The notes under the pieces: model-generated
Told to the model about the DNA's origin: nothing
Seen by the model: only the letters and a program-made list of their open reading frames with translations
The model's database searches: none
Made by a program: the position numbers and the translations under genes
From: Entomortierella parvispora E1425
Lineage: Eukaryota; Fungi; Mortierellomycota
Direction: 5' to 3'
Assembly: GCA_020891255.1 (NCBI GenBank)
Contig: BQFW01000015.1
Location: 2,604,001-2,668,000, forward strand
Length of the DNA: 64,000 nucleotides
Part shown: in pieces, positions 1-21,009 of the stretch
How the letters are laid out: the number at the start of each line of letters is the position of its first letter
Position numbering within the stretch: the stretch's first letter is position 1

Positions 1-1154
1 TTGAAATGAGCATCAATTCGATCTCGACAGCCTACTGCGGATCTTGCCCCAACATCCAACGCCACTCGATGCCAGTCTACTGCACTCATTTGTTCGGGAC
101 TGATCTCGGGCCAACACTGCTTTTCTTTGAGTTTTTCATGAGTTCCCTCTGAACCCCCGCTGAGAGGCAGCTCTTCATTGGTCCTGTTGCCTTGATGCAT
201 ATCGGAAGGGCCAGGGTTGGAGGTCGAGCTCAGTTGGATCCCGAGCTGGCTGTAAACTGACTTCATCAGCAGGGTATCCTCCTCGTTGGTCCAAGCGCCC
301 TTGGAGAGGAAGGGTCGAGCTTCGAGTAGTTTAAATCTGATTATACACGAGCTTTGGTTTCGCATCATATCCAGACCCTGTCTTTCCTTGGGGTCACTTA
401 GCATGCGGCTGAGTTCATGTCTCCATCGATCTGGATTTCTCTCCTTCGCTTTCTGGACAAGATCCTTTAAGATGCTGTCCTCCTCTTCTGTCCAGTAAGT
501 GTTGGGTTTCTTGTGTTTCTCTGTTGTAGTTATAACTCGGCCACCTTGCTTACTACCTTGGCTTTCTTCTCCTATTGCAAAAGAAGATACTGTTCTCTTC
601 CTGTCAATGTCATGAGAAGCTGGACGAAGTTGTGCCAATCGCAACATGATGGCGTCCAGCGTTCTGCATGGGAAATGGGTCGTCATCTCCATAGGTGTCG
701 CGCCGGCGTTGTGCATTTCCAAGAGCCTGTCCTTCTCGTCAGAAGTCCACTTTTTGAGAGGGATAGATACCCTGATATTGGAAACTTGGCAGATGACGGC
801 TTTACTTGACCGACCAGGAAAGAATGATATGATGGATCGGATGGTGGGATTCCTTCCGTCCGAGTAGAAATACTTGAGACGATCCAATTCATCTTTTGAC
901 CAGGCCACAGGGGAATTCCTGACTGAACGGGGCTTTCTCTTCTTAGGCTCCGTTGGAGGTGTACTTGGGACCGATGCTTGTGGAGCCATGGTTCCATTCC
1001 CAGCGATTGAGTTGATCAAGCCGCCATGGAAAAGTCGTGATTGCGGTGAAACGCGCATGGCGGTCAATGAGATCACCAGAGTTGATGGTCTGTTGATCAG
1101 TGGCATCCATGAACATGCATTGTGGATGCACTTTGAATGCAACGCAGCGAACAT
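1..1154 (-). CDS. Myb/SANT-repeat protein with presequence-like N-terminus, copy 0 (3' end lies outside the window)
   Basis: Hand translation of the minus strand from ATG at 1154 gives MFAALHSKCIHNACSWMPLINRPSTLVISLTAMRVSPQSRLFHGG...AWSKDELDRLKYFYSDGRNPTIRSIISFFPGRSSKAV..., with no stop seen before base 1. It is missing from the ORF track, presumably because no stop lies in the window. Confidence 0.88.
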   Translation of the reverse strand, partial: MFAALHSKCIHNACSWMPLINRPSTLVISLTAMRVSPQSRLFHGGLINSIAGNGTMAPQASVPSTPPTEPKKRKPRSVRNSPVAWSKDELDRLKYFYSDGRNPTIRSIISFFPGRSSKAVICQVSNIRVSIPLKKWTSDEKDRLLEMHNAGATPMEMTTHFPCRTLDAIMLRLAQLRPASHDIDRKRTVSSFAIGEESQGSKQGGRVITTTEKHKKPNTYWTEEEDSILKDLVQKAKERNPDRWRHELSRMLSDPKERQGLDMMRNQSSCIIRFKLLEARPFLSKGAWTNEEDTLLMKSVYSQLGIQLSSTSNPGPSDMHQGNRTNEELPLSGGSEGTHEKLKEKQCWPEISPEQMSAVDWHRVALDVGARSAVGCRDRIDAHF

Positions 1155-1389
1155 GTCCGATGAATCCTGTCCTCTGCTGTCCTGGCTGTCTTTTTTGGGC
1201 TGATCGTGTTGAGGAAAGAGAGAGAGGTTTTTTTTTTTTTTTTCAATTCCATATCTGTGACTTCGACGAAGCATTCGCTCAGATCGCGTCCTTGCCTCTT
1301 GCCAGAAAATCTACGCATGTCCGTTGCCACTTTTGACAAAACGAGAGAGCTCAAGCCAAGGGAATTGAAGATAGGACATTATTGCTCTT

Positions 1390-2706
1390 TTATTTTCTTC
1401 GGTAAACAAGGCTATTGTATTTTATCAGCACCTGAGATGGTGCCCTTGTGCCTACTACAGTCGCGACCTTTGCCCAGTCTCGTCCATGCAGCCTTAAGCC
1501 CTCCCTCAACCGTTCAATTTCCTCTTTTGTCCACCGTTCCCCCTTTTTGAGCATGAAATGAGAAGTAATTCGCTGTTGGCAGCCTTTTGCGGATCTTGCC
1601 CCAACATCCAACGCCACTCGATGCCAGTCCACTGCTTTCATTTGTTCCGGACTGATCTCGGGCCAACACCGCTTTTCATTGAGTTTTTCGTGAGTTCCCT
1701 CTGAACCCTCGCTGAGTGGCGGCTCTTCATTGGTCCTGTTTCCTTGATACATATTGGAAGGGTCGGGGTTGGAGGTCGAGCTCAGTTGGATCCCGAGCTG
1801 GCTGTAAACTGACTTCATCAGCAGGGTATCCTCCTCGTTGGTCCAAGCGCCCGTGGAGAGAAAGGGTCGACTTTCGAGTATTTTAAATCTGATTATACAC
1901 GAGTTTTGATTTCGCGTCATATCTAGACCCTGTCTTTCCTTGGGGTCACTTAGCATGCGGCTGAGTTCATGTCTCCATCGATCTGGGTTTCTCTCCTTCG
2001 CTTTCTGGACAAGATCCTTTAGGATGCTGTCCTCCTCTTCTGTCCAGTGAGTGTCCCGTTTCTTGTGTTTCTCTGTTGTAGTTATAACTCGGCCACCTTG
2101 CTTACTACCTTGGCTTTCTTCTCCCATAGCAAAAGAAGATACTATTCTCTTCTTGTCAATGTCATGAGCGGCTGGACGAAGTCGTGCCAATCGCAACATG
2201 ATGGCGTCCAGCGTTCTGCATGGGAAATGGGTCGTCATCTCCATAGGTGTCGCGCCGGCGTTGTGCATTTCCAAGAGCCTGTCCTTCTCGTCAGAAGTCC
2301 ACTTTTTGAGAGGGATAGATACCCTGATATTGGAAACTTGGCAGATGACGGCTTTACTTGACCGACCAGGAAAGAATGATATGATGGATCGGATGGTGGG
2401 GTTCCTTCCGTCCGAGTAGAAATATTTGAGACGGTCCAATTCATCTTTTGTCCAGGCCACAGGAGTATTCCTGACTGAACGGGGCTTTCTCTTCTTGGGT
2501 TCCATCGGAGGTACGCTTAGGACCGATGCCTGTGGAGCCATGGTTCCATTCCCAGCGACTGGGTTGATAACGCCAACATGAAGGCGATGCGATTGCGACA
2601 ATACGCGCGAGGACGCCAAGGACGGCATGAGATTCGAGGGATGCTTGACGAATGAAAGTCGAGGCCTCACATCAGGCAGGCATCGTGAGCACAATGCAGC
2701 CAACAT
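1390..2706 (-). CDS. Myb/SANT-repeat protein (5 repeats), copy 1, 438 aa
   Basis: Intronless ORF. Repeats start WTKDELDRL, WTSDEKDRL, WTEEEDSIL, WTNEEDTLL and WTKEEIERL...DWAKVATVVGTR, the classic W-T/S-x-E-E-D Myb helix-1 signature. Confidence 0.92.
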   Translation of the reverse strand: MLAALCSRCLPDVRPRLSFVKHPSNLMPSLASSRVLSQSHRLHVGVINPVAGNGTMAPQASVLSVPPMEPKKRKPRSVRNTPVAWTKDELDRLKYFYSDGRNPTIRSIISFFPGRSSKAVICQVSNIRVSIPLKKWTSDEKDRLLEMHNAGATPMEMTTHFPCRTLDAIMLRLARLRPAAHDIDKKRIVSSFAMGEESQGSKQGGRVITTTEKHKKRDTHWTEEEDSILKDLVQKAKERNPDRWRHELSRMLSDPKERQGLDMTRNQNSCIIRFKILESRPFLSTGAWTNEEDTLLMKSVYSQLGIQLSSTSNPDPSNMYQGNRTNEEPPLSEGSEGTHEKLNEKRCWPEISPEQMKAVDWHRVALDVGARSAKGCQQRITSHFMLKKGERWTKEEIERLREGLRLHGRDWAKVATVVGTRAPSQVLIKYNSLVYRRK

Positions 2707-2769
2707 GGTTGGAGATTGACGAAATGTCCTGGAGGTGGATGTCCTGATTGTCCTGATTGTCCTGCAGGA

Positions 2770-2870
2770 AAGATGCAGTTTCGGCGGAATTTTTGACGCG
2801 TGAAATTTTTGTCATCCGCGGTGGCTTTGATGCCGAACCGCGTCTGACATTCTAAGAGACCATGTCCTTA
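2770..2870 (-). promoter_or_regulatory. Conserved upstream module of the Myb genes containing ACGCGT (MCB-like)
   Basis: ACGCGT at 2796-2801, 90 bp upstream of ATG 2706. The flanking block GATGCAGTTT...ACGCGTGAAATTTTT...GTGGCTTTGATG...CGCGTCTG-CATTC-AAGAGA recurs upstream of other copies. Confidence 0.5.
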
Positions 2871-3010
2871 TTGCAATCCACGTCTGTCGGTCAATGCAGA
2901 TCCAGTCCGGATCGCATTGCCCGCTTCTTCATATCAGAACAGCTATACACGTCAATTATCTGAGATCGGCAAAGAAGAGAGAGGTCAATTAAAGGGACAG
3001 CGTGTTTTTA

Positions 3011-4342
3011 TTATATGTTCCTCTTTCGGAGAGTGTAATCGTACTTTGGTTTCACTTGAGACGCTGCCTTTGTACCTACAACAGTGGCCACCTTTGCCCA
3101 ATCTCGTCCATACAGCCTCAAACCCTCCCTCATTCTCTCAACTTCTTCTTTTGTCCACCGTTCCCCTTTCTTGAGCTTTAAATGGGAATCAATTCGATAT
3201 CGACAGCTATTGGCGGTTCTTGTTCCGATATCCAACGCTACTCGATGCCAATCCACTGCTTTCAATTGTTCCAAGTCAATTTCAGGCCAGCGCTCCTTTT
3301 CCCTGCGTTTTTTCAATGCTGCTTTTGAATCTTCCCTCAGTGATGGTCTGTCATCCGTCTGCTCTTGCTGAGCAGTATTTGAATGAAGTTTCGAAGGCGA
3401 GTCCAACTGGATCCCAAGCTGGCTGTATACCGATTTCCTGAGCATGATATCTTCACTTGCAGTCCACCGGCTCTTGGAGATGAATGGCTGTTTTTGGAGG
3501 CGTTCTAATCTCCCGATACACGATTTCTGGGTTCGCGTCATAGCCAGACCCTGTCTTTCCACGGGGTCACATAGCATGAGGCTCAGTTCATAGCTCCACC
3601 GATCTAGATTCCTCTCCTTGGCTTTTTGGACAAGGCGCTCTAGGACGCTGTCCTCCTCTTCTGTCCAGTAAGTCACGGGCTTTCTGAGCCTCTCTGTTGT
3701 AATTATAGCTCCGTCACCTTGCTTACTACCATGATCATCTCCTCCGTTTTCATCCCCCAATACTAAAGGCGATATCATTCTCCTCCTGTCGATGTGATAA
3801 GAAGCTGGACGGAGTCGATTCAATTGTTCCGTGATGGACAGCTGGGTTCTGCCTGGGAAATGAGTCGTAATCTCTAGAGGAGTTGCCACGCCAGCGTTGT
3901 AGAGTTCCAAGAGTCGATCTTTATCTTCAGGACTCCAGTTCTTGCGAGGGATAGGTGTCCTGATCTTGCGAATTTGACTGGCGACTACGTTCCTTGACCG
4001 ACCAGGAAAGAGTGATGAGATTGATTGGATTGTGGGATTCTTTCCGTCTGAATAGAGGTATTTGAGACGGTCCAATTCATCCTTTGTCCAGGGCACACGA
4101 GTCCTTTTGGTTGAAGTTGCCTTTCCCTTGTCAGCGTCAGACTCAGGTGCGGGCGAGACGGAGTCTTGTGGAATCAAAGCTTGATGCTTGGCGAATGAGT
4201 TGGTGAAGCTGACATGGAAAAGTCGCGATTGTGGTGAAAGACGCATGGTTGTCCATGAGACTGCAAATGTTGATGGTCTGTTGATCAATGGCATCCATGA
4301 ACACGCTTTGTGGATGCATCTTGAATGCAACGCAGCTGACAT
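3011..4342 (-). CDS. Myb/SANT-repeat protein, copy 2, about 443 aa
   Basis: ORF 3011..4471. The likely start is MSAALHSRC at 4342, homologous to the other copies; the upstream poly-K comes from a poly(A) tract. Five Myb repeats. Confidence 0.9.
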   Translation of the reverse strand: MSAALHSRCIHKACSWMPLINRPSTFAVSWTTMRLSPQSRLFHVSFTNSFAKHQALIPQDSVSPAPESDADKGKATSTKRTRVPWTKDELDRLKYLYSDGKNPTIQSISSLFPGRSRNVVASQIRKIRTPIPRKNWSPEDKDRLLELYNAGVATPLEITTHFPGRTQLSITEQLNRLRPASYHIDRRRMISPLVLGDENGGDDHGSKQGDGAIITTERLRKPVTYWTEEEDSVLERLVQKAKERNLDRWSYELSLMLCDPVERQGLAMTRTQKSCIGRLERLQKQPFISKSRWTASEDIMLRKSVYSQLGIQLDSPSKLHSNTAQQEQTDDRPSLREDSKAALKKRREKERWPEIDLEQLKAVDWHRVALDIGTRTANSCRYRIDSHLKLKKGERWTKEEVERMREGLRLYGRDWAKVATVVGTKAASQVKPKYDYTLRKRNI

Positions 4343-4590
4343 GGCCGATGAATCCTGTCCTTTGTTGTCCCGATTGTCCTGATCGTGCTGATTGTTCGGC
4401 AGGAAAGAGAGAGAAGGGGTTTTTTTTTTTTTTTTTTTTTTAATTCCCAAGTCTGTGACTTTGACGCACATTCGCGTTTGTGGGTCAAGGCATATCGAGC
4501 CTGGATTGCGTCGCCATGGCTCTTTTTCTCTTATCAGAAAATCTACTCATGTCTGTTGTAAGACTCGACAAAGCGAGTGAGGTTGCCTTT

Positions 4591-5919
4591 TTATTGTTTT
4601 TGTTTTTGTTTTTGACGAGTAAGCCCATTATATTTTATCAGCACCTGAGATGGTGCCCTTGTGCCTACTACGGTCGCGACCTTTGCCCAGTCTCGTCCAT
4701 ACAGCCTCAAACCCTCCCTCATCCTCTTAACTTCTTCTTTTGTCCAGTGTTTCCCCTTTTTGAGCATGAAATGGGAATTAATTCGTTCTCGACAGCCTGC
4801 TGCGGATCTTGCCCCAACATCCAACGCCACTCGATGCCAGTCTACTGCACTCATTTGTTCCGGATTGATCTCCGGCCAACACTGCTTTTCTTTGAGTTTT
4901 TCGTGAGTTCCCTCTGAACCCTCGCTGAGTGGCGGCTCTTCACTGGCCCTGTTTCCTTGATACATTTTGGAAGGGCCAGAGTTGGAGGTCGAGCTCAGCT
5001 GGATCCCGAGCTGGCTGTAAACTGACTTCATCAGCAGGGTATCCTCCTCGTTGGTCCAAGCACCCTTGGAGAGGAAGGGTCGAGCTTCGAGTAGTTCAAA
5101 TCTGATTATACACGAGCTTTGGCTTCGAGTCGTTGCCAGACCCTGTCTTTCCTTGGGGTCACTTATAATGCGGCTGAGTTCATGTCTCCATCGATCTGGA
5201 TTTTTCTCCTTTGCTTTCCGAACAAGACGCTTTAGGATGCTGTCCTCCTCTTCTGTCCAGTAAGTGTTGGGTTTCTTGTGTTTCTCTGTTGTAGTTATAA
5301 CTCGGCCACCTTGCTTACTACCTTGGCTTTCTTCTCCTATTGCAAAAGAAGATACTGTTCTCTTCCTGTCAATGTCATGAGAAGCTGGACGAAGTTGTGC
5401 CAATCGCAACATGATGGCGTCCAGCGTTCTGCATAGGAAATGGGTCGTCATCTCCAGAGGTGTCACGCCGGCGTTGTGCATTTCCAAGAGTCCGTCCTTC
5501 TCGTCAGAAGTCCACTTTTTGAGAGGGATAGATATCCCGATCTTGGAAACTTGGCAGGTGACGGCTTTACTTGACCGACCAGGAAAGAATGGCATGATGG
5601 ATTGGATTTTGGGATTCTTTCCGTCCGAATAAAGGTATTTGAGACGATCCAACTCATCCTTTGACCAATGCACAGAAGTCTTTTTGATTGGAATTGTTGT
5701 TCCCTTGTTAGCCTCAGACTCGTGTGTGGTTGAGACGGATCCTTGTAGAGCCAAGGTTCCATTCCATGCAACTGGGTTGATCACGCCAACATGAAGGCGA
5801 TGCGATTGCCACAAAACACGCGAGGAAGCCAAGGACGGCATGAGATTCGAAGGATGCTCGACGAATGAAAGTCGAGGCCTCACATCACGCAAGCATCGTG
5901 AACACAATGCAGCCAACAT
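4591..5919 (-). CDS. Myb/SANT-repeat protein, copy 3, about 442 aa
   Basis: ORF 4591..5961; start MLAALCSRCL at 5919 by homology; five Myb repeats. Confidence 0.9.
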   Translation of the reverse strand: MLAALCSRCLRDVRPRLSFVEHPSNLMPSLASSRVLWQSHRLHVGVINPVAWNGTLALQGSVSTTHESEANKGTTIPIKKTSVHWSKDELDRLKYLYSDGKNPKIQSIMPFFPGRSSKAVTCQVSKIGISIPLKKWTSDEKDGLLEMHNAGVTPLEMTTHFLCRTLDAIMLRLAQLRPASHDIDRKRTVSSFAIGEESQGSKQGGRVITTTEKHKKPNTYWTEEEDSILKRLVRKAKEKNPDRWRHELSRIISDPKERQGLATTRSQSSCIIRFELLEARPFLSKGAWTNEEDTLLMKSVYSQLGIQLSSTSNSGPSKMYQGNRASEEPPLSEGSEGTHEKLKEKQCWPEINPEQMSAVDWHRVALDVGARSAAGCRERINSHFMLKKGKHWTKEEVKRMREGLRLYGRDWAKVATVVGTRAPSQVLIKYNGLTRQKQKQKQ

Positions 5920-5984
5920 GGTCGAGGATTGACGAAATGTCCTGGAGATGGATGTCCTCATTGTCCTGAATGTCCTGCAGGAAA

Positions 5985-6080
5985 GATGCAGTTTCGGTGG
6001 AATTTTTAACGCGTGAAATTTTTATCATCCGCGGTGGCTTTGATGCAGAGACGCGTCTGTCATTCAAGAGATCGTGTCCT
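5985..6080 (-). promoter_or_regulatory. Conserved upstream module with ACGCGT (x2)
   Basis: ACGCGT at 6009-6014 (90 bp upstream of ATG 5919) and at 6051-6056; same flanking block as 2770-2870. Confidence 0.5.
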
Positions 6081-6109
6081 TTCTTTCTTTTTCATTTTCG
6101 CCTGGTCAA

Positions 6110-6480
6110 CGAGGGTTGTTTACGTTGTAGCGACAAGAACTGGCGTCTTTGCACCCACTGCAGCTACATCCTTTGCCCAATCAAATCCACTCTTCCCAAG
6201 GCCTTCCTTCAGCTTTTCAACCTCATCTGTAATCCAGTGTTTCCCTTTCTATGGAATTAATTGTTACAACTGTCTTCAGCTCTAGTCCCAACACCCAACG
6301 CCACTCAACGCCAGTCCACTCATTGCTTTCAATTGCTCCAAGTCGATCTCGGGCCGGCGCCCCTTTTCCTCGTGCTTCTTTGATGATGCTCTTGAATCTC
6401 CCCACAGGGGCGATCCATTATCAGTCTGGTCTGATGACCAGCATTTGGATGAAGTTTGGAAGGCGAATAGAACTGGCCAC
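6110..6480 (-). pseudogene. Decayed C-terminal fragment of a Myb-array gene
   Basis: The minus strand reads EEKGRRPEIDLEQLKA (cf. KERWPEIDLEQLKAVDW) and then shifts frame. Downstream it reads WITDEVEKLKEGLGKSGFDWAKDVAAVGAKTP (cf. repeat 5). No N-terminal half is present. Confidence 0.75.
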
Positions 6481-6645
6481 CAAGCGACTGTACTGTACAC
6501 TGGTCACCACAGGAGAGAGAGAAATCAAAAACTCCTTTCTTTTTTTTATCTACGCAAACTCACGTCTGTCGGTGAAGGCAGATCGAATCCGAATCGCATT
6601 GCCATTGCGCTTCTTCGTATCAGAACAGTTATGCATGTCAATTAT

Positions 6646-8043
6646 CTAGGATTGGCAAAGAAGAGAGATGTCAAAGGAAATGTACGATTGGACTTTTTTT
6701 TTTTTTTTTTTGTTTATATACCTCATTTGGCAAATAAGCCTATGGTATTTTGCTTCTACTTGGGATGGTGTCCTTGTCAGTACTGCAGCTGCAACCTTTA
6801 CCCAGTCTCGTCCATACAGCCTCAAACCCTCCCTCATCCTCTTAACTTCTTCTTTTGTCCAGTGTTTCCCCTTTTTGAGCATGAAATGGGAATCAATTCG
6901 CTGTTGGCAGCCTTTTGCGGATCTTGCCCCAACATCCAATGCCTTTCGATGCCAGTCCACTGCTTTCATTTGTTCCGGACTGATTTCTGGCCAACACTGC
7001 TTTTCATTGAGTTTTTCGTGGGTTCCCTCTGAACCCTCGCTGAGTTGCAGCTCTTCATTGGTCCTGTTTCCTTGATACATATCGGAAGGGCCAGGGTTGG
7101 AGGTCGAGCTCAGTTGGATCCCGAGCTGGCTGTAAACTGACTTCATCAGCAGGGTATCCTCCTCGTTGGTCCAAGCACCCTTGGAGAGGAAGGGTCGAGC
7201 TTCGAGTAGTTCAAATCTGATTATACACGAGCTTTGGCTTCGAGTCGTTGCCAGACCCTGTCTTTCCTTGGGGTCACTTATAATGCGGCTGAGTTCATGT
7301 CTCCATCGATCTGGATTTTTCTCCTTTGCTTTCCGAACAAGACGCTTTAGGATGCTGTCCTCCTCTTCTGTCCAGTAAGTCCAGGGTTTCGTGTGTCTCT
7401 CTGTTGTAGTTATAACTCGGTCACCTTGCCTATCACCATGGCTTTCTTCTCCCATTGCAAAAGAGGATACTATTTTCTTACTGTCAATGACATAAGAGGC
7501 TGGACTAAGTCGTGCCAATCGTGACAGGATGGAATCCTGCGTTCTGCCTGGGAGGTCTTTCAGCATCTCTAGAGGCGTCGCGCCGGCGTTGTGCATTTCC
7601 AAGAGTCGATTATCCTCCTCAGTGCCCCACGGTTTGCGAGCAGTAGGCACCTTGAACTTGCGAATTTGAAAGGCGACTGCGTCTCTTGACCGACCAGGAA
7701 AGAATGGTGTGATAGATAGGATTGTGGGATTCTTTCCGTCCGAATAAAGGTATTTGAGACGATCCAGCTCATCCTTTGACCAGAAGGTATGGGTGTTTTT
7801 GGTTTTAGATGCCATTCTATCTTGGGCGTCTGACTCTGGCGTGGTCGAGACAGTTGAGACGGATTCTTGCGGAGCCAAGGTCCCATTCCGTGCAACTGGG
7901 TTGATCACACCGACCTGAAGGCGACACGATTGCGACAAGACGCGCGAGGAAGCCAAGGACGGCATGAGATTCGAAGGTTGCTTGTGGAATGGAAGTCGAG
8001 AACGTACATCACGGAAGCATTGTGAACACAATGCAGCCAACAT
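6646..8043 (-). CDS. Myb/SANT-repeat protein, copy 4, 465 aa
   Basis: Intronless ORF with the same architecture. The C-terminal KKKKKK tail comes from read-through into a poly(A) tract. Confidence 0.9.
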   Translation of the reverse strand: MLAALCSQCFRDVRSRLPFHKQPSNLMPSLASSRVLSQSCRLQVGVINPVARNGTLAPQESVSTVSTTPESDAQDRMASKTKNTHTFWSKDELDRLKYLYSDGKNPTILSITPFFPGRSRDAVAFQIRKFKVPTARKPWGTEEDNRLLEMHNAGATPLEMLKDLPGRTQDSILSRLARLSPASYVIDSKKIVSSFAMGEESHGDRQGDRVITTTERHTKPWTYWTEEEDSILKRLVRKAKEKNPDRWRHELSRIISDPKERQGLATTRSQSSCIIRFELLEARPFLSKGAWTNEEDTLLMKSVYSQLGIQLSSTSNPGPSDMYQGNRTNEELQLSEGSEGTHEKLNEKQCWPEISPEQMKAVDWHRKALDVGARSAKGCQQRIDSHFMLKKGKHWTKEEVKRMREGLRLYGRDWVKVAAAVLTRTPSQVEAKYHRLICQMRYINKKKKKKVQSYISFDISLLCQS

Positions 8044-8216
8044 GGTCGAGGATTGACGAAATGTCCTGAAGTGGATGTCCTGATTGCACTGGGTGTCCCG
8101 ATCGATGGTCTAGCTGGAGAGATGCACTTTGAGCGAAAATTGACACGCGAAATCGACACATCGATCGCGCGTGGCTTAGATCAGAGCCGCGTCTGTCATT
8201 CAAGAGACCATGTCCT

Positions 8217-9557
8217 TTATTTCTTTTCCTTGTTCGCCTTGTAAACCTGGTATCTGTACTTTGAAGCGCACTGAGCTGATGTCTTTGTTCCCACTACAGT
8301 TGCGACCTTTGCGTAGTCTCGTCCGTACTGCCTAAGGCCGTCCTTCAGCTTTTCAACTTCTTCTTTTGTCCAGTGTTCCCCCTTCTTGAGTTTGAAATGA
8401 GAAGCAATTCGATCTCGACAGCCTGCTGCGGATCTTGCCCCAACATCCAACACTACTCGACGCCAGTCCACCGCTTTCAGTTGTTCCCAGCTGATCTCAG
8501 GCCAGCGCTCCATTTCCTGGTATTTGTTTAACGACGCCTTTGAACCTCGCCTCATTGATGATCCGGAATCAGTCTGCACTGTCTGAGTAGTATCTGGATG
8601 TGGTTTGGAATGCGAGTCCAACTGGATCCCAAGCTGGCTACATACTGAGTTCCTCAGTAAGCTATCCTCATATGCAGTCCAAGGGCTCTTGGAGACAAAT
8701 GGCTTTTTTTCGAGGAGTTCTAATCTCGCCATACACGCTTTGTGGGTGCGCACCATAGCTAGACCCTGTCTCTCCATGGGGTCACTGAGCATGAGGCTGA
8801 GTTCATGGCTCCATCGATCAGGATTTCTCTCCTTGGCTCTCTGGACAAGACGCTTTAGGATGCCATCCTCTTCTTCAGTCCAAAAAGTCCTGGGCTTCTT
8901 GAGTTCTTCTGAGGTGACAATAGCCCCCTGGTTCTTCGTGCTACTGTGGTCGTTGACTCCATGATTTTCTTTTCCCAAGACATAATGGGACACCATCCTC
9001 TTCCTGTCGGAGAAATAGGATCGCGGACGAAGGCGGCTCAGTTGACTAATGACGGATTCCTGGGTCCTGCCTGGAAAGTGATTCAACATCTCTATAGTTG
9101 TTTCGCCGGCGTTATAGAGTTCCACGAGTCGAGCTTTCTCGTCCGGGCTCCATTTCTTGCGAGGAATAGGTGCTCTTAGCTTGGAAAGTTGAATGGCGAG
9201 AGCCTTCCTAGATCGTCCGGGAAAGAAGGATGTGATAGATTGGATTGTTGGATTTTTTCCGCCCGAATAGAGATGTTGGAGTCGATCCAGCTCATTCTTT
9301 GACCAGGGCACACGAGTCTCTTTAGGCGGACTTTCCGTCTCCTCTATTGCTTCATGCTGAGGCATGGTAGAGGCCATGCTCTTTGAAGTCAAGGATCGGT
9401 TTCGGGTGAATGACCTGATCAAGCCGGCATGGAAACGTCGTGGTTGTGACAATGCGCGCGAGGGTGCTAATGGAGCCTTTAGATTGAAAGGCCGCCTGAC
9501 GAATGAAAGCCGAGAACGCACATCACGGAGGCATCGTGAACATGATGCAGCCAGCAT
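8217..9557 (-). CDS. Myb/SANT-repeat protein, copy 5, 446 aa
   Basis: Intronless ORF; MLAASCSRCL...QPRRFHAG leader; five Myb repeats. Confidence 0.9.
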   Translation of the reverse strand: MLAASCSRCLRDVRSRLSFVRRPFNLKAPLAPSRALSQPRRFHAGLIRSFTRNRSLTSKSMASTMPQHEAIEETESPPKETRVPWSKNELDRLQHLYSGGKNPTIQSITSFFPGRSRKALAIQLSKLRAPIPRKKWSPDEKARLVELYNAGETTIEMLNHFPGRTQESVISQLSRLRPRSYFSDRKRMVSHYVLGKENHGVNDHSSTKNQGAIVTSEELKKPRTFWTEEEDGILKRLVQRAKERNPDRWSHELSLMLSDPMERQGLAMVRTHKACMARLELLEKKPFVSKSPWTAYEDSLLRNSVCSQLGIQLDSHSKPHPDTTQTVQTDSGSSMRRGSKASLNKYQEMERWPEISWEQLKAVDWRRVVLDVGARSAAGCRDRIASHFKLKKGEHWTKEEVEKLKDGLRQYGRDYAKVATVVGTKTSAQCASKYRYQVYKANKEKK

Positions 9558-9781
9558 GGTCGATGATGTGTCCCTTGCAGTCTTGATTGACCTGAATGTC
9601 CTAGAAGTCTCTGATTGTCGAGGAGAGATGCAGTTTGGGCGAATTTTTTTTGGACGCGTAAAAATTTATTATAAATCCTTCACTTGTGGCTTTGATGCAG
9701 ATAGAGATGGCCGTTACCATTCCTTCTTCTGCAGGAAGGACGCACACGCACACGCGCACGATACACACCCAGTGGGCAGGT

Positions 9782-10350
9782 TTAATAGATAAAAGGGTCG
9801 TTTTGATCCTGCCTGCGGTTACTCTGGTTGCTGCCTTCCTTACTTTGCTCTCCCAGCACAGATGAGACCACCATCCTTTTCTTGTTTGCGAAGTATGATG
9901 CGGGAAGAAGGCAATTCAACTGTGACACAAGAGATTGGTGTGTCCGGTCAGGGAAGTGTTCCAGCATGTCGTATGTGGCCACAACAGCGCTGTGCAATTC
10001 CAAGAGTTTCTCCCTGTCCTTGGGACTCCAGTCAGTTCTTGCGAGAGGGCATGTTCACAGTGGGTATAGATTCGATTGATAAGAGCACGTTTTGACTGGC
10101 CAGGAAAGAGCGCCATGATGGATTGAGGTGTAGGGTACCTTCCGTCTGAGAAAAGGTGTTTGAATAGCTCCTTTTCTTCTTCTGGCCAGGGCACACGTCT
10201 CCTTTTGACTAGAGTTGTTTCCGTCTTCCTTGGTTCTGACTGGGGTATAGATGCGATTGGTCGTTTGTGGCTTTATTCGGCTCATGGCTCAGCGTGGTCG
10301 AGGCTTGCGATAATATACGATAAAAGCACGCCCTGTAGCAGGTGGCCATT
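9782..10350 (-). pseudogene. Frameshifted, 3'-truncated Myb-array copy (N-terminal half only)
   Basis: VPWPEEEKELFKHLFSDGRYPTPQSIMALFPGQSKRAL is repeat 1. An apparent 4-bp ACTG duplication (aagaACTGACTGgagt) shifts the frame before WSPKDREKLLELHSAVVATYDMLEHFPDRTHQSLVSQL (repeat 2). A stop follows the linker. Confidence 0.8.
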
Positions 10351-10650
10351 CCCGCCTGGTTATCATCATTTGGAAGCAGGAAATGGAGTATGTGGAAAAG
10401 ATAAAGGGGGGAAAGTCCCTTTTCTTGTGCCCTCTTCCTTTTTTTTTTTTTTTTTTTTTTTTTTGGGTTGATTTCATACGACGTTTTTGTAGCTGTGAGA
10501 GGCAACATCCATGGACTAGACGCATCTTTTCCATTGTATCCTGTCCGTTGCACTGTGTTGGGATCAATACATTTGACGGAAGGTAATGGCTCGAATGTGT
10601 CCTGGACTGAATCCTGCTTTCTCCAAGAGTTGATAAAGTAAAAACGAAAT

Positions 10651-11940
10651 TTATTCCAAATATTCATTTCGGAATTTCATGTAGATCTGCCAAGGCGTCC
10701 TTGTCCCAAGAGCTTGGGAAATCCTGTCCCAGTCGTCTCCATACTTCAAAAGAAGGGATTTCATCGACTCCAGTTCTTCCTTTGTCCACGATCCGACATG
10801 ACGGTTCGTCATCATGTTCATGAACCGTCGTCGGCAATTATATTTATCTCTGCCCCCCATTCGCTCGGACACACTGCTCCAGTCTATGCCTCCTAGTTCC
10901 ATCGAGTGCGGGGCTAGATATCTCTTTTTGGATCGTCCTGCCTTCTTCCCTGGTGTCTCCTGACTGCCCTCATCATTGTCCTTGCTACTTGAAGTGTCGG
11001 CAGCGAGATCAATTCCTGGGTAGAAATTCGGTCCAATCTGAGCTGCCACCGCAGCTCTAAGTAGCTCATCCTCCTCTGCAGTCCAGCGGGCGCAAGCGGG
11101 CAGACCGCGATGCCGCAGTGAGTTCAATCGTTGAATAGCCGTTTTCACACTCCGAGACGGATGCAGCCCTTGTCTATTATCCGAGTTACTCATGAGTCTT
11201 CCCAGCTCCACTTTCCAATGCTCCGGGTCAGCCTTCTTTGCCCTCTGGACGAGTTTTCTCAAAATTTCATCCTCTTCAGCGGTCCAATATTGGGGTTTAG
11301 ACCGGGTGCCATCAGTGTTGACGCTTTCTTTCTTCTCTAAGATTGCTGGCGTCAGCTTCCTGACTGAGCGCCGATGACGAAGGAGTCCCAGCCTGTGGAG
11401 GATACTTAAATGAGTTCTATGCTCAAACGATTTCACCATGTCGATCGGCTCGACACCCGAAGCCTCCAGCGCCAAAAGCCTGTCAATCTCGTCCCGCGTC
11501 CAAGCCCGCCCACGGGTACTCAATTTCAACCTCAATACTTTCGTCTTGAGGGCAGGAAGGGTTCGATCAGGAAATTCGGTCTGAAGCTGGTCTCTGGAGC
11601 AAGACTGGCCGTCTGCAAAGAGCTGAATGAGGCGCTGGGTTTCCTCATTTGTCCAGAGGGCCTTCTTTGAGTCTCCAATCATCGTTTTTGGAATGTTGGC
11701 TGTTTTTAGGCCATTACCAGCGCCCGGTGCTTTGTTGTTCTCGAGAGATGGGGTGCTGATAGTGAAGGACCTACTGTCTGAAGCCGTATTGTTCTTTGCT
11801 ACTTGGCGCGTGTTGGAAAAGGTCCAACCGGGAAAAAGGTGTCTAGGCGATGCTGCCGTAGCTAGAGAACATGTCGATGGACGGAGTACGGCTGGTACAC
11901 AAATGCTGCGGATGCATCGGGGATGGAGTATGGTCAACAT
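10651..11940 (-). CDS. Myb/SANT-repeat protein, divergent copy 6, 429 aa
   Basis: Repeats WTNEETQRL, WTRDEIDRL, WTAEEDEIL, WTAEEDELL...IDWSSVSERMGGR and WTKEELESM...DWDRISQALGTR; Arg-rich, acid-free N-terminus. Confidence 0.88.
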   Translation of the reverse strand: MLTILHPRCIRSICVPAVLRPSTCSLATAASPRHLFPGWTFSNTRQVAKNNTASDSRSFTISTPSLENNKAPGAGNGLKTANIPKTMIGDSKKALWTNEETQRLIQLFADGQSCSRDQLQTEFPDRTLPALKTKVLRLKLSTRGRAWTRDEIDRLLALEASGVEPIDMVKSFEHRTHLSILHRLGLLRHRRSVRKLTPAILEKKESVNTDGTRSKPQYWTAEEDEILRKLVQRAKKADPEHWKVELGRLMSNSDNRQGLHPSRSVKTAIQRLNSLRHRGLPACARWTAEEDELLRAAVAAQIGPNFYPGIDLAADTSSSKDNDEGSQETPGKKAGRSKKRYLAPHSMELGGIDWSSVSERMGGRDKYNCRRRFMNMMTNRHVGSWTKEELESMKSLLLKYGDDWDRISQALGTRTPWQIYMKFRNEYLE

Positions 11941-12069
11941 GATAGATGGTAGAGAAGATTCAATGATGTTGCCTGCCCATCTTTTGCATGCGTGACTTCA
12001 TTTTGCACAGAGCGTTGGATGGTCGGGTCGCGTTTCTTTTTTTTTTTTTTTTTTTTTTTTGGCTGTACC

Positions 12070-12260
12070 CACTGGGAATGCTTTTGCTGGAGCGGTGTCT
12101 TTCGTGTTCCATGAAGCAGGTACTTCACCCTGACTTGGTTGGCTGTCCTTGTTCCAACCAGCTCTGCGTTCCTTTCCTCCCCCTGATAGCCGTACTGTTT
12201 GACGCCCTCCTTCTCATGTGAACTTCACCCCTTTGACCAGCAGTTCTTGACTTTGGTTGT
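12070..12260 (-). pseudogene. Highly decayed Myb repeat-5 remnant
   Basis: Across shifting frames the minus strand reads LLVKGVKFT*, KEGVKQYG and AELVGTRTANQVRVKYLL, matching FMLKKGKHWT / REGLRLYG / ATVVGTRAPSQVLIKY. Boundaries are approximate. Confidence 0.6.
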
Positions 12261-15626: not shown

Positions 15627-18283
15627 TCACTGCTGACCATCTGTTTTTCGCACCTTTGAAGAACTACCGAGCGCGTCATGGCTGTCCTCGCCACCAGTCT
15701 CAATGGCAGACACCCTGTCCACAGTCGCGAATGTAGCAGATGTGGCCGACGACGCGGTAGGGATTTCGCCTACAATTTCTTCGTTACTGCTGAGGATGCC
15801 TTCCCGCTTCCGTTTCTTGTACTCTTGTGCCCTCCAGTACCACCAATTGGGTCCGTCCCGCTCCATCTCAGCCTTGTTTGTCTTCATTTTGCGATGAAGC
15901 TTCGATTTCAGATGTTGCTCCCAACTCTTTGGTCCATGAATAATTACAGGTTGTGGAGTCTCAGAAGACCCAAAGCTACCGCCAGCATTCTTTTTGTCCT
16001 TCATGATCCGTTGCATCTGTGTGCAAATCTCGCATTCTTTCTTCTCCCACGACTCTAACGCAGAAATGGCACTATCGGGACGAATGAATGCAAGACAATA
16101 GGCGTCAGTTTGCTTCTTCAAAGATAGTCAGAGGGCCAACAGTCGACAAGTTCTTTTTTCAAATCCTTACTCAAGATCTCGATGTTCTATCGTAAGCATA
16201 TCCTTTGCGTATATATTGAGCTCTGAAGGGTCAGGAAGGTCATTTCCAGCAAAGAAATCTATACAACGACCACAGTGGCCAGCCAGGACGAGCAAAAAAA
16301 AAGTCAGAAATGGGCTACGGAAACACGGGCTAAAGAGTCCGTGTCAACGCCATGCTGAATCACTGATCATACCTTTCGCGATCTTGACGGCGACATTGCC
16401 CACGTTTTCCTTCCATGTATCCAAAGATGTCGCGTCTAGGAGGAATATCTTGACATCCTTCTCCTTGCAAAGCGGCAATAATTTATTGCGGATCCAGAGC
16501 ACCTGGCGTTTTGCATATTGCCTCGTCTTTGCTTTCATGATCTCTGTGCATTCCTTCTTCAGTGCCTCTAGTTCCTTTGTGTCTGTGGGCGATCGATAGT
16601 ACCAGATTCAAGATGTGATTAATGCGATCATCCAATATTTCCAACTCTTTTGACCTGCAAATAGCATCCTGCTGCCACACGTACCTGTTGACTGTCCTGT
16701 TGCCAAAGCTGCTTCAACAGCTGTGAAGTACGGATCGAATTCCTTGTAACCTTAGGCATCAGAGGAATCAAGAGGTCAGCAAACATCTGTGGTAAAAACA
16801 GGATATGAAAAGTAAAACGTTCATATCTTCTTACCAATCGCTTGCCATATGCCTCGCTCATAGTCTGTGTCCGGACCAACGCTCTTTCTCATGCCTTTGA
16901 TTTCGTCAAAAAGTCCACCCTAGTGTTTTTAAATAGCCCAAAATATAGAGGACGTCCATCTCTGTGAGTCCTTGATTGCTTTTACCTCATTGGCCGCAAT
17001 ATTTGGTTCCATCAAGCATACCTTGATCATGGCATCAACTCTTGCGTCTAACCGAGCGTTCAGGACATCGGATGCCGAGTACACCCAAAATATACATGTT
17101 GGCATCCTGTATTCAGCCATCCATGGTTAGAGACTCCAATGATTTGCTTTGATAAACTCCTTGCATCGATCGTCTCTCGTTCTCACCTCAGTCTTTGAGC
17201 ATCCATTACTGAATGCTGTTTTTTGATCAAATCGCTCTGACACTCGCCAGTCTCGAAAAAGACCTTTAAAAAAATTGAAATAATTAATACCAGATCACCC
17301 ATTGCCACCAAAATGACAAAATCAAATCAGAGATCCTCATATCACCCACCTGCAGAGATCGGGTAATCTTGCGGCGGTCATTCTCATGCCACTTGTTGGC
17401 CATGAGAGGGTCTACTTCCTTGAGCTTTTGGTATAAGGTGGCTGTATCCGAGTCTCTCAGGAAAGCCTCATTTGCTCTAACCTCTTCTTCCTGTTCCTTG
17501 ACTTGGTTATCAGAAAGGAGTCGTCCAACGTTTTTTTTCGTGTCCAAGAGTGTATCCCGCCAAAGGAGTGACTGTACGTAATAATGAGTTCCGCCCACCA
17601 CCACTGGCAAATGCTTTCGCTCATGGATCTTTTGGATCTATGTTTCAGCAGCAGAAAAAGAAGCGCCCTTTGGTTAGCGCCCGACTTTTTTCTTTGTTCC
17701 TATAACTCATCAGAGGTGGGGTGTACGCATGATTCTAGACTTCTCAAGTCAAAATTCCAGTCTGAGCCTCCAGTGCGGTCACCCTGTATTTTTTTCCCCT
17801 CTCTGTTCTTACCAGGTCCAGCGCATCAGCTTTGAAATCCAAGACGGAATACTCCTGATCCATGGGCAAGAAATCCATCAGATGGTGAACGACACCTTCG
17901 CGCTCCTCGATCGGCATCTTGTTGGTGATGATGTCCAGGCCTTTATAAACCTGAAGTGTGTCCGCGTTGATCACTTCGCCAGAGAGCTCTTTGGCCAGTT
18001 GGATCGAGAGGTTGGATTTCCCGACGCCTGTTGTGCCAATCACGGCAATGACTCCCGGATCCATGGCTCTATTGAGGGCTCTTCTCTGATCAAAGACCGA
18101 TGTGGAGCTGCTTGAGCGGGTTTGATTCAAGAAACGCGGTGACTGTTGACGAGTCTGACCGCGCGCAAGTATTTGTGGGAATCGGACGGCGGATGAAATG
18201 GCTGCCCTTGAGAAAATGGACGCGGTGTTCGCTGAAGTAATGTGGTTATGGACAGTCGCTGAAATGAGTCGCCATGCATGCAT
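15627..18283 (-). CDS. MOD5: tRNA dimethylallyl/isopentenyl transferase (multi-exon)
   Basis: VIAVIGTTGVGKS P-loop, INADTLQVYKGLDIITNK, HHLMDF, PVVVGGTHYYVQSLL, KTRQYAKRQVLWIRNK and a C-terminal C2H2 finger (CEIC...WEQHLKSKLH). In-frame ATGs at 18283 and 18064. Confidence 0.95.
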
Positions 18284-19105
18284 TTCTCCTTTGGTGGTCC
18301 AATGTCGTTCGTCGTTTCCGCTGTCCAATGCAAGGAAGGTGGTCGCGGGCAGAAAGGAAGAAAGAGCCAAAAGAGCCAGTGCTGCGTCATGTGGAGAGTT
18401 GGTGGCGCATTGCGTGAACAAGCCACAAAAAAAAAAAAAAAAAAAAAAATGAAAACCCTTCAAAAAGAGTGGAAGGACACGAAGGGTGAAAGCATGATGA
18501 ACATGTTCATTATCGGGAGGTATTATTTCTTGGTCAATCATTGTCGTGATTTTATTGAGGTAAAGAAAATCTCGAGATGGGGGCATGAATTGACTAAATT
18601 AAAAAAAAAAAAAAAACTTCTTGAAGATGAGGTAGAGAAGGTCAGATAAAGAACTTGCTGGGTTCAATGTGTGAGAAATCAAGAAAGGGAATTGGTATCC
18701 GTTGGTCCAGCAAGCCCACAAAAAAGAGCATGATGAAGAGTATTGAGTGGAGGAAAGTACAGAATGAACAAAATAAAAAAGGCAATGAAGCATCTTCAAG
18801 AATAAAAGAGAAAAGGAGGGTGTCGATGGGTGCAAAAACAAGACACAAAAAGACTCTGGGGCCACGGTGGGAGCACTGATGAGGGGGTTGAAGAAAGAAG
18901 CAAACTACACTTGAGCAAGCACGTCCGGTCGAGATCGCTATTCCCTTTGTAAAAACTTCACATTGCGGCGATCGCGACCATCCTGCTTATCCATCATCGC
19001 TCGGCTCTTTCCGTTTCTTCCTCCCACTGATCCAAAGCCGTCCAATTGTCCCATCGTCCAGTGAACTATTCATCCCCTTATATCGCTAGCTTCCGTGTAG
19101 GAAAC

Positions 19106-21009
19106 TTAGGCCTTGGCCACAAAGTGACCAAAGACCAAGTCGCAACCATCAAACTCGTACAGGATACGATCCGTGCGAGTGAAGCCAGAGACACGGCCCA
19201 TGGCCTTGATCATGTGACGCTGGCGGCGCTCCGTCTGGCGCTCCGTCTCCATCTGACCATCCTCAGTCAAATGGGACGAAAACAAGGTAACGCTCATGGT
19301 GCCAGGCTGGAAGATCTCGACAACACGCGAGATCAAGTCAGTCAAAGTCTCTGGTCCGGTGTAAGGAACCTGGGCAACAACATCCTCAGTCTTGGCCGCC
19401 TTCTCCTCCTCAGAAGAATCGCCGTTCTCGCTCGAAGCGGACGAGGCAGAAGCAGAGCTCTCGCCCGAGGTAGTGCGAGCGCGGCTCTTGGAAGACTTCT
19501 TCTGGCGCAATCCAACAGGGATGTTGGTCTCGAAGGAGGCATACGAGCAGACGGGCTCGGGGGTCACATGGATGGTGTAGTAGTTTCCTTCCTGGAGAGC
19601 GTTGGCAGAGTAACCGCAGGGTGTGAACAAGAAAGAGTCCAACTGAGCCTGAGGGAAGAGGCCGGCCAATCCAGTTTCCTGGTCCACACGCACACCGCCG
19701 ACAGTACCCGCAACATCGTCAGGACGCTGGTAGAATCGCTTCATAGCCTCTGGGTTGAGGTTGGTCATCAAAATCTCGACCGTCTGATCGTGCGAAGGGT
19801 AGAGGTAGCTGGCGCTGCTGGCCGAAGAGGCCATCGAGATTGAGGACGACGAAGAAGACACAGAGGAAGCCGAAGACTCTCCAGGGGACGCCAATGAGGT
19901 AGAATCTTGTCCTGAAATGAGGTCGCGGGTGACAATGTTCAGGTTGCGAGGAATGTCATCAGCAACGGCCGAGACCTCAGCATCGGGAACAGAAGCATCA
20001 TGTCCACCAACGATCAAGGTCTGCTCATCGTTATCCACAGAGCCGACGCTGTTGCGGCGAGAGGTGATGTGGGACAAACAATCGTCCTGGGGTGCAGTCA
20101 AGTACAGACACCAGTGATCACCATTGACCTTTCCGACAGTGTAGGCAGATCCGTGCTCTATTGAAAAAACAATGTAAAATAAGATTAGGGGATTGACAAC
20201 AGCAAACAATGACAAGCCACCGTGAGATAGAAGATCAATCATCTGAAAACAAACTAAAACTTACCGAAATGGCGATCCAAGAACTCAACCTCGTCCTTCC
20301 AATCGCGGTGTACGTGCAATTGACGCTCAGGGAACATGAATGTCTTGCGCGAGTAGAACACACGCCAGACCTTCTCGAAGCCACAGTAGTTCTGGGCAAT
20401 CTCCAAGATCTTGGGCAACGCCATCAACAAGGTCGTGGTGCCGCAAGTCTTGAGAATGAGCTTGTGAGGGTAGACAAAGAACGAGGACTCGCTCAAAAGG
20501 AACGCGTCCATGCAGTCATTCTGAATCTGGTTCAGAACCTGGCATTTGACAATGGCCAGCATCTCGTCCCACACGGGCTTGGGAACAATGCGAAGTCCAT
20601 AACGGTCAGATCCTCCATGAGAATTGTCCGTCACGGTTTCATCTCCAGTGCTAACAGTCGACTGGAGTTCGGCAGGGATAGTACGAATTCCCTGCAAAAG
20701 GTAAGGAGCTGGACCAAACCAAATCTCCAAAAGCTTCTCGGGACCCTCAAAGGATCCAGCTTCCTGGGTGTCATTGGTAGTATCCAGGAAGGCATCATTC
20801 TCAAAACCAGCCTCGTTGTTGTGCAAGTGAGCAGGGGCAACAGGGGCTGGGGCGGCGGCGTCGGAAGTTACGGTAACATCGTTGTTGGTGGCGGTGGCAG
20901 TAGAAATGTTGTTATCGACAGAGTCGTTGAGGTATTGCAGGGCAGCAGACTTCAGCTCACCGGTGGCGGCGGCTTGGGCCAGGGAGGGGAGAGGGACAGG
21001 AACAGTCAT
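19106..21009 (-). CDS. SPE2: S-adenosylmethionine decarboxylase proenzyme (2 coding exons; intron about 20158-20264)
   Basis: FEGPEKLLEIWF, AFLLSESS (self-cleavage site), LILKTCGTTTLL, FYSRKTFMFP, FTPCGYSAN, YYTIHVTPEPVCSYASFETN. Confidence 0.96.

Follow-up and report, generated by a model that had tools for sequence, protein, structure and literature searches.

A tandem array of five-repeat Myb-domain genes with a predicted organelle-type leader in the fungus Entomortierella parvispora

Few eukaryotic DNA binders have been studied as thoroughly as the Myb-repeat proteins. What, then, is the significance of a locus in the fungus Entomortierella parvispora E1425 at which closely spaced, intronless genes for multi-repeat Myb proteins follow each other head-to-tail? 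The window analyzed here is a stretch of 64,000 nucleotides from contig BQFW01000015.1 (2.80 Mb; record positions 2,604,001-2,668,000), and negative positions given below denote the adjacent contig DNA before the window start, which was joined to it. Spread over about 14 kb, from record position 2,602,250 to 2,616,212, the array is made up of eight intact genes along with three relics, every one of which is on the minus strand. The gene products appear to define a Myb-domain family of DNA-binding proteins that was amplified in tandem and has an unusual arrangement of five repeats behind a leader of the organelle type. Taken as a whole, the locus is probably best explained by the amplification in an array of a Mortierellaceae-specific family of five-repeat DNA binders, the copies of which are functional and diverging.

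Organization of the array

All seven minus-strand open reading frames (ORFs) that an initial annotation had listed for the window, including the one cut by its edge (<1-1154), were recovered by an ORF check with exactly the same boundaries. The adjoining DNA, part of a sequence that overlaps window positions 1-9548 exactly, completes the cut copy, c1, and holds an eighth intact copy, c0. A search with a family hidden Markov model (HMM) of the six-frame translations from -11750 to 22000 returned eight full-length matches and three fragments, the latter agreeing in number with the three relics claimed earlier, and no further copy or fragment in this range. The components of the array are as follows:

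-1750..-404, minus strand: c0, intact gene outside the window (GenBank EMPS_11492)
-174..1154, minus strand: c1, mosaic gene of 442 amino acids, extending 174 nucleotides beyond the window start (window positions 1..1154 hold its first 384 codons)
1155..1389, minus strand: spacer of 235 bp between c1 and c2, with the 3' end of c2 and the putative promoter region of c1
1390..2706, minus strand: c2, intact gene of 438 amino acids with five Myb repeats
2707..3010, minus strand: spacer of 304 bp between c2 and c3, in which a tandem pair of TCAGGACA motifs lies shortly before the c2 ATG
3011..4342, minus strand: c3, 443 amino acids from the conserved ATG (the mechanical ORF reaches 4471)
4591..5919, minus strand: c4, intact gene of 442 amino acids
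6129..6455, minus strand: relic A, fragment of repeats 4b and 5 in two frames
6646..8043, minus strand: c5, 465 amino acids, with the family match stopping at 6721
8217..9557, minus strand: c6, 446 amino acids, annotated in GenBank and used for structure modeling
9806..10266, minus strand: relic B, fragment of repeats 1-2 in two frames
10651..11940, minus strand: c7, 429 amino acids, the oldest branch
12108..12212, minus strand: relic C, short repeat-5 fragment with a weak family HMM match (E = 2e-4), at the upstream end of the array

The spacers separating intact neighbors measure 173-304 bp, so that the previously given range of 235-305 bp was nearly right, save for one spacer of only 173 bp; where a relic intervenes, as it does twice, the spacer is 726 or 1093 bp long. 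In terms of sequence there are two spacer types, both of which display an A-tract and, after it, a CT-rich box situated some 60-70 nucleotides upstream of the ATG (in the spacer at 1155..1389 the box lies about 70 nucleotides upstream of the c1 ATG), while one type additionally bears tandem TCAGGACA motifs. We read these spacers as compact promoters, whereby each unit of the array would come with its own short promoter-like segment made up of the A-tract and the CT box. Within the array there are seven occurrences of the octamer TCAGGACA, six of them within about 50 nucleotides upstream of the ATGs of c2, c3, c4 and c5 (sites 2740-2756, 4375-4382, 5962-5969 and 8062-8083) and two of the sites being tandem pairs. 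It is found 12 times in the whole window against an expectation of 3.7, and may represent a shared cis-element or a repeat of the 5' untranslated region; since the spacers are homologous, much of the excess is due to common descent.

GenBank provides gene models for just four of the eight copies, namely c0, c3, c6 and c7, and three of these models start late; that of c3, for instance, has 411 residues and begins at a later methionine, and that of c7 has 343. The young mosaic copies c1, c2, c4 and c5 have no GenBank gene model, which may be due to multi-mapping RNA-seq hints or to absent expression. In c5 the ancestral stop codon has been lost and 25 further codons (6646-6720) run into the spacer, with its A-tract being read as poly-lysine.

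Domain architecture of the proteins and their affinities

The proteins are 429-465 residues in length, basic (isoelectric point 9.5-10.1), and each is encoded by a single uninterrupted, intronless ORF. The Pfam models Myb_DNA-binding and Myb_DNA-bind_6 match each copy with E-values of 1e-16 to 1e-26; the six window copies scored against the Myb/SANT superfamily (PF00249 / PF13921) attain 71-91 bits, where the cut-off is 24.4, and a Pfam scan detected no domain in the copies beyond the Myb ones. An AlphaFold2 model of c6 (8217-9557), built with an alignment of 24 family sequences, has a disordered segment spanning residues 1-80 and five three-helix repeats at residues 87-127, 138-176, 228-283, 295-388 and 398-445, in agreement with the leader and five Myb/SANT repeats originally proposed for these proteins. 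Between helices 1 and 2 of repeat 4 lies a disordered stretch of about 47 inserted residues (310-356), which splits this repeat. A tryptophan at the start of every repeat is invariant in the family alignment. Charge is unevenly distributed, with repeats 1 and 5 being strongly basic as against a neutral to acidic character of repeats 2 and 4; the C-terminal tail is basic in several copies. With this architecture the proteins would most likely be sequence-specific binders of double-stranded DNA.

To place the family among known Myb proteins we compared its profile with the PDB. The best match is the Myb array of human SNAPC4 (E = 8e-27), followed by the DNA-binding domain of c-Myb (4e-22), and with a single copy as the query SNAPC4 is the only PDB match below 1e-5 (6.6e-11). 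SNAPC4 (SNAP190) is the subunit with Myb repeats in the snRNA-activating protein complex SNAPc, which binds PSE elements of snRNA genes. Like the present family, it has a multi-repeat Myb array (Rh-Ra-Rb-Rc-Rd), and its own insert-split repeat aligns with repeat 4 of the family along with the insert. However, the alignments are local, overlapping and non-colinear (repeats 4-5 with 199-361, repeat 3 with 361-434 and repeats 4b-5 with 440-517), and none extends outside the Myb repeats. The N-terminal region of SNAPC4 that binds SNAPC1 and SNAPC5 is absent from the family, which has a disordered, presequence-like leader instead; its members are of about 440 residues (429-465 in the array) as opposed to over 900 in SNAPC4, and eight tandem copies contrast with one SNAPC4 gene. 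Because these defining non-Myb features are lacking, we do not place the family in SNAPC4. A separate candidate for the SNAPC4 orthologue, a Haplosporangium protein of 1001 residues, had no PDB match below 1e-5.

The c-Myb/Myb3R (R1R2R3) proteins share the same three-helix repeat with conserved tryptophans, but they have three repeats rather than five and none split by about 47 residues as in repeat 4 of the family; further, repeat 5 of the family is SANT/SHAQKYF-like, and the family has neither a transactivation nor a negative-regulatory domain. The terminator and promoter factors Reb1, Nsi1, TTF1 and DMTF1 are comparable in having several Myb-like repeats with insertions, a basic character, a similar size and weak fold matches; yet they are single-copy nuclear genes, and their Myb-associated domain was not detected in the family. 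Membership in the Reb1/TTF1/Nsi1 group can be set aside, with the match to 5eyb_A (E = 2e-6) comprising no individually significant stretch and the fold comparison giving a template modeling score (TM) of 0.23-0.29. Fold searches in general returned only generic multi-Myb matches at TM < 0.3, because the repeats are arranged as beads on a string. Thus, the initial comparison with Reb1, TTF1, DMTF1 and SNAPC4 holds for the general architecture and not for a closer kinship, with SNAPC4 being nearest though devoid of its defining features and Reb1 being marginal.

Phyletic distribution of the family

Word-indexed protein searches recovered few relatives, and it was an exhaustive search of representative sequences that revealed the family. 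In this profile-free search, for which the most divergent copy served as the query, 890 Myb proteins were recovered; among them homologues aligning end-to-end come only from Mortierellaceae, namely Linnemannia, Mortierella, Podila, Lobosporangium, Gryganskiella and Haplosporangium. These homologues are annotated merely as "hypothetical" or "Myb-like domain", and a literature search found no paper describing the family, in keeping with the earlier impression that it was undescribed. They are 20-25% identical to the window copies and most of them lack repeat 1. Closer relatives, with 47-50% identity, are encoded in soil metagenomes. The family would hence represent a Mortierellaceae-specific group of intronless genes for basic five-repeat proteins of about 440 residues.

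A stable family with the same copy number in relatives was not seen: the relatives examined mostly have one copy per locus, with the exceptions being one that has an adjacent relic and one that has at least two tandem copies. Three Linnemannia species each have an intronless gene with no second copy within 21 kb. About 215 bp upstream of the single gene of L. elongata there is a fragment of about 68 residues resembling repeat 5 (9583-9787 of that locus), which looks like what is left of a tandem duplication in a different genus. In one metagenomic source (L007, L008) a second copy precedes in tandem. A scan of metagenomes for further arrays gave a single weak match.

Turnover within the array and differential constraint on the helices

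In a phylogenetic tree c7 is basal, with 29-30% amino acid identity to the other copies and saturated dS; next comes a polytomy from which c0, c3, c6 and three metagenomic sequences emerge alongside the ancestor of c1, c2, c4 and c5, which form a young clade. Sliding-window comparisons uncover a mosaic structure superimposed on this history. Copy c1 is 95-97% identical to c0 over the upstream spacer and the first ~120 codons and 55-70% identical beyond, while its middle is 98-100% identical in patches first to c2 and then to c4. Similarly, c4 and c5 are 100% identical over alignment codons 260-320 and 67-80% identical in the 5' third, and the same mosaic breakpoints are observed in the 5' alignment. 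Such patches of 96-100% identity between diverged copies show that the array has recently undergone gene conversion or unequal crossing-over. A second sample with the same species label, whose contigs account for the first 6 kb only in part (88-95% identity), has a contig with a c3-like 5' end fused to a c2-like 3' end and another that omits 442 nucleotides of c3; as a hint from filtered contigs, this suggests that array composition varies between isolates. Together with the eight intact copies, the three relics and dS values from 0.18 to saturation, the mosaics and the differing second isolate uphold the birth-and-death expansion envisaged in the initial annotation. In mechanistic terms, unequal crossing-over in E1425 would have built the 14-kb array, with recent gene conversion shuffling segments among the copies.

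We then considered the constraint on the copies. The whole-gene pairwise ratio of nonsynonymous to synonymous substitution rates (dN/dS or omega) ranges from 0.36 to 0.75. When partitioned by structure, omega is 0.22-0.27 for helices 1 and 2 of the repeats, which form the scaffold, and 0.82-0.95 for the third or recognition helices. The low scaffold values hold even inside the young clade, and the youngest pair displays one nonsynonymous as against four synonymous changes in the scaffold helices. We also used five phylogenetically independent pairs, i.e. pairs sharing no tree branch, which comprise three from the window and two with metagenomic relatives: their ratio of nonsynonymous to synonymous proportions (pN/pS) is 0.32 in the scaffold versus 0.71 in the recognition helices, with similar pS, and the nonsynonymous:synonymous counts compare as 158:66 versus 146:120 (Fisher P = 4e-4). 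The scaffold helices are under purifying selection, and amino acid change is about three times faster in the recognition helices. Given that all eight ORFs are intact despite dS reaching saturation, and that the scaffold is under such selection, the copies appear to remain functional. As the scaffold is kept while the recognition helices change and segments are reshuffled, the array probably specifies a suite of related factors whose DNA specificities are diverging.

In dynamics alone, this situation is reminiscent of the clusters of KRAB zinc-finger genes and of plant Rf-like PPR genes, which likewise form head-to-tail arrays with relics and gene conversion, and in which the residues determining specificity outpace the scaffold in evolution. 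The Rf-like PPRs are, in addition, targeted to organelles. Both kinds of cluster differ in having an unrelated fold, and in the present array the faster change of the recognition helices fits relaxed constraint as well as positive selection.

The N-terminal leader and predicted mitochondrial import

The leader preceding the repeats is rich in arginine, serine, threonine, alanine and leucine, and its omega of 0.44-0.46 indicates that it is a constrained coding sequence. Over their first 40 residues, 22 of 25 members of the family have 4-9 arginines and lysines and 0-2 acidic residues, compared with about 11% acidic residues overall. Genera with mutually unalignable leaders share this acid-poor composition. 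Near residues 40-45 nearly all members have an R-x-[F/Y/L] motif (R-x-Y in Podila), which matches the R-3 cleavage motif of matrix-processing-peptidase sites. By composition, the leader has the features of presequences of matrix-targeted precursors: it is net positive, hydroxylated and nearly free of acidic residues, with a putative cleavage motif of the type that has arginine at -2 or -3. In terms of language-model features residues 1-70 are nearest to ATP synthase subunits, the ATPase inhibitor, COX5B and the RuBisCO small subunit; this nearness to small organelle-imported precursors comes with low scores and is to be taken as a lead only. On balance we somewhat favor the prediction that the family proteins are imported into mitochondria, possibly with a dual localization in the nucleus.

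Alternative explanations

Several observations weigh against the preferred picture of functional, diverging DNA binders equipped with an import leader. As regards the divergence, the omega of the recognition helices is below 1 overall, which relaxed constraint accounts for no less well than positive selection, and the pairwise estimates are blurred by gene conversion. As regards DNA binding, the neutral or acidic repeats 2 and 4 may make no DNA contact. As regards the leader, an NLS (nuclear localization signal)-like KKRKPRS motif lies just after it in c0-c2, the later starts of the three GenBank models would drop all or part of it, and, to our knowledge, every characterized Myb relative is nuclear.

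The last three of these points, along with the basic C-terminal tails, favor the strongest competing explanation, namely that the genes form an ordinary, tandemly duplicated family of nuclear transcription factors in which the leader is merely a basic, disordered N-terminus. The copies would then be sub- or neo-functionalized regulators acting at chromosomal promoters, as in the tandem R2R3-MYB clusters of plants, and the nuclear location of SNAPC4, c-Myb, Reb1 and DMTF1 offers obvious precedents. Set against it are the recurrence of an Arg/Ser-rich, acid-poor N-terminus in genera that have no leader sequence identity and its termination at a motif typical of matrix-peptidase sites; moreover, the NLS-like motif is unconserved among the copies. 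We regard this explanation as a serious contender, with chances a little short of even.

A second alternative, that only one or two copies are working and that the others are pre-pseudogenes whose fast recognition helices reflect lost constraint, draws on the three outright relics, the lost stop codon of c5, the lack of annotation of the young clade (c1, c2, c4 and c5) in GenBank and a recognition-helix omega near 1. Nevertheless, all eight ORFs have stayed intact over 429-465 codons at dS values of 0.18 to >0.9, and neutral decay would not selectively spare helices 1 and 2, for which omega is low even within the young clade. Hence, we consider decay unlikely as an account of the array.

The ambiguity of the recognition-helix values also bears on the notion, put forward in the initial annotation, that an expansion of this kind marks a conflict system. 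For this part of the proposal, a recognition-helix dN/dS of about 0.7-0.95 fits relaxed constraint equally well and no antagonist was identified; a conflict-related role is a possible but unproven reading of the array.

That the array is a product of mis-assembly, with fewer true copies, is very improbable: although the source sample is represented by short Logan unitigs that are interrupted within the array, the copies differ from each other at 10-57% of their DNA positions (43-90% pairwise identity), far above polished long-read error, so that the array is no assembly collapse, and each copy has its own spacer and relic pattern. The published assembly combines Nanopore reads at x409 with Illumina polishing (PMC8759367). 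The short-read unitigs, which derive from the assembly's own sample and are in that sense not independent of it, match individual copies at >=99%, i.e. at least that identity, and one of them bridges the c2/c3 junction.

Two further candidates were rejected. A transposon-borne Myb gene, such as the Myb-like partner of Harbinger elements, is contradicted by the units consisting of a Myb ORF and a spacer only with no transposase, by the five repeats in place of the expected single Myb/trihelix domain and by the housekeeping flanks. Likewise, a subtelomeric location is inconsistent with the position of the array about 186 kb from the contig end, amidst housekeeping genes.

Genomic neighborhood

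On one side the array is flanked by a gene without Pfam domains and on the other by two genes that served as synteny anchors:

17457-18586, minus strand: tRNA isopentenyltransferase
19106-21009, minus strand: S-adenosylmethionine decarboxylase

In a metagenomic relative (L006) a lone family member lies between the isopentenyltransferase and S-adenosylmethionine decarboxylase genes, in divergent orientation, whereas in E1425 the family HMM detected no family sequence in the gap of about 520 bp between the two anchors. With the anchors present but no family member between them, the array seems to occupy another spot in the ancestral neighborhood, and the adjacency of the two genes here indicates a local rearrangement of the locus. 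The proteins encoded by the anchor genes are 74-90% identical to those of the metagenomic relative, while the Myb gene attains just 47-50%, implying that the family evolves much faster than its surroundings. The Linnemannia genes are located in another neighborhood, with ribosomal protein S7e and a CTP transferase, and a tblastx comparison of the array with the Linnemannia loci for synteny yielded only noise. Elsewhere in the window there are four long ORFs (31927-32715, 36359-37225, 37993-38877 and 39565-40233) with no Pfam match at E <= 0.001.

Implications

A more specific possibility, which we consider quite unlikely at present, is that the family constitutes a hitherto unknown class of nuclear-encoded, mitochondrion-imported Myb proteins with DNA-binding repeats and that the array supplies a repertoire which diversifies to keep up with changing targets in mitochondrial DNA. 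These targets would be, for instance, mobile introns or other selfish elements of the mitochondrial genome, which at 66 kb is rich in introns and ORFs. If this were true, the repertoire would be the fungal equivalent, built on Myb repeats, of the Rf-like PPR clusters in plants. We know of no Myb-type family of mitochondrial DNA-binding proteins, nor did a literature search find any. If the leader does direct import, this would be the first such mitochondrial Myb family, and its tandem diversification would point to nuclear-mitochondrial co-evolution or conflict in fungi.

What is new in the family is a five-repeat Myb architecture that is confined to Mortierellaceae and has no characterized member. 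The array presents a compact case, from an early-diverging fungus, of evolution via patchy gene conversion along with unequal crossing-over, and its eight paralogues, which differ mainly in their recognition helices, would offer a natural series for mapping changes in the DNA specificity of Myb proteins.

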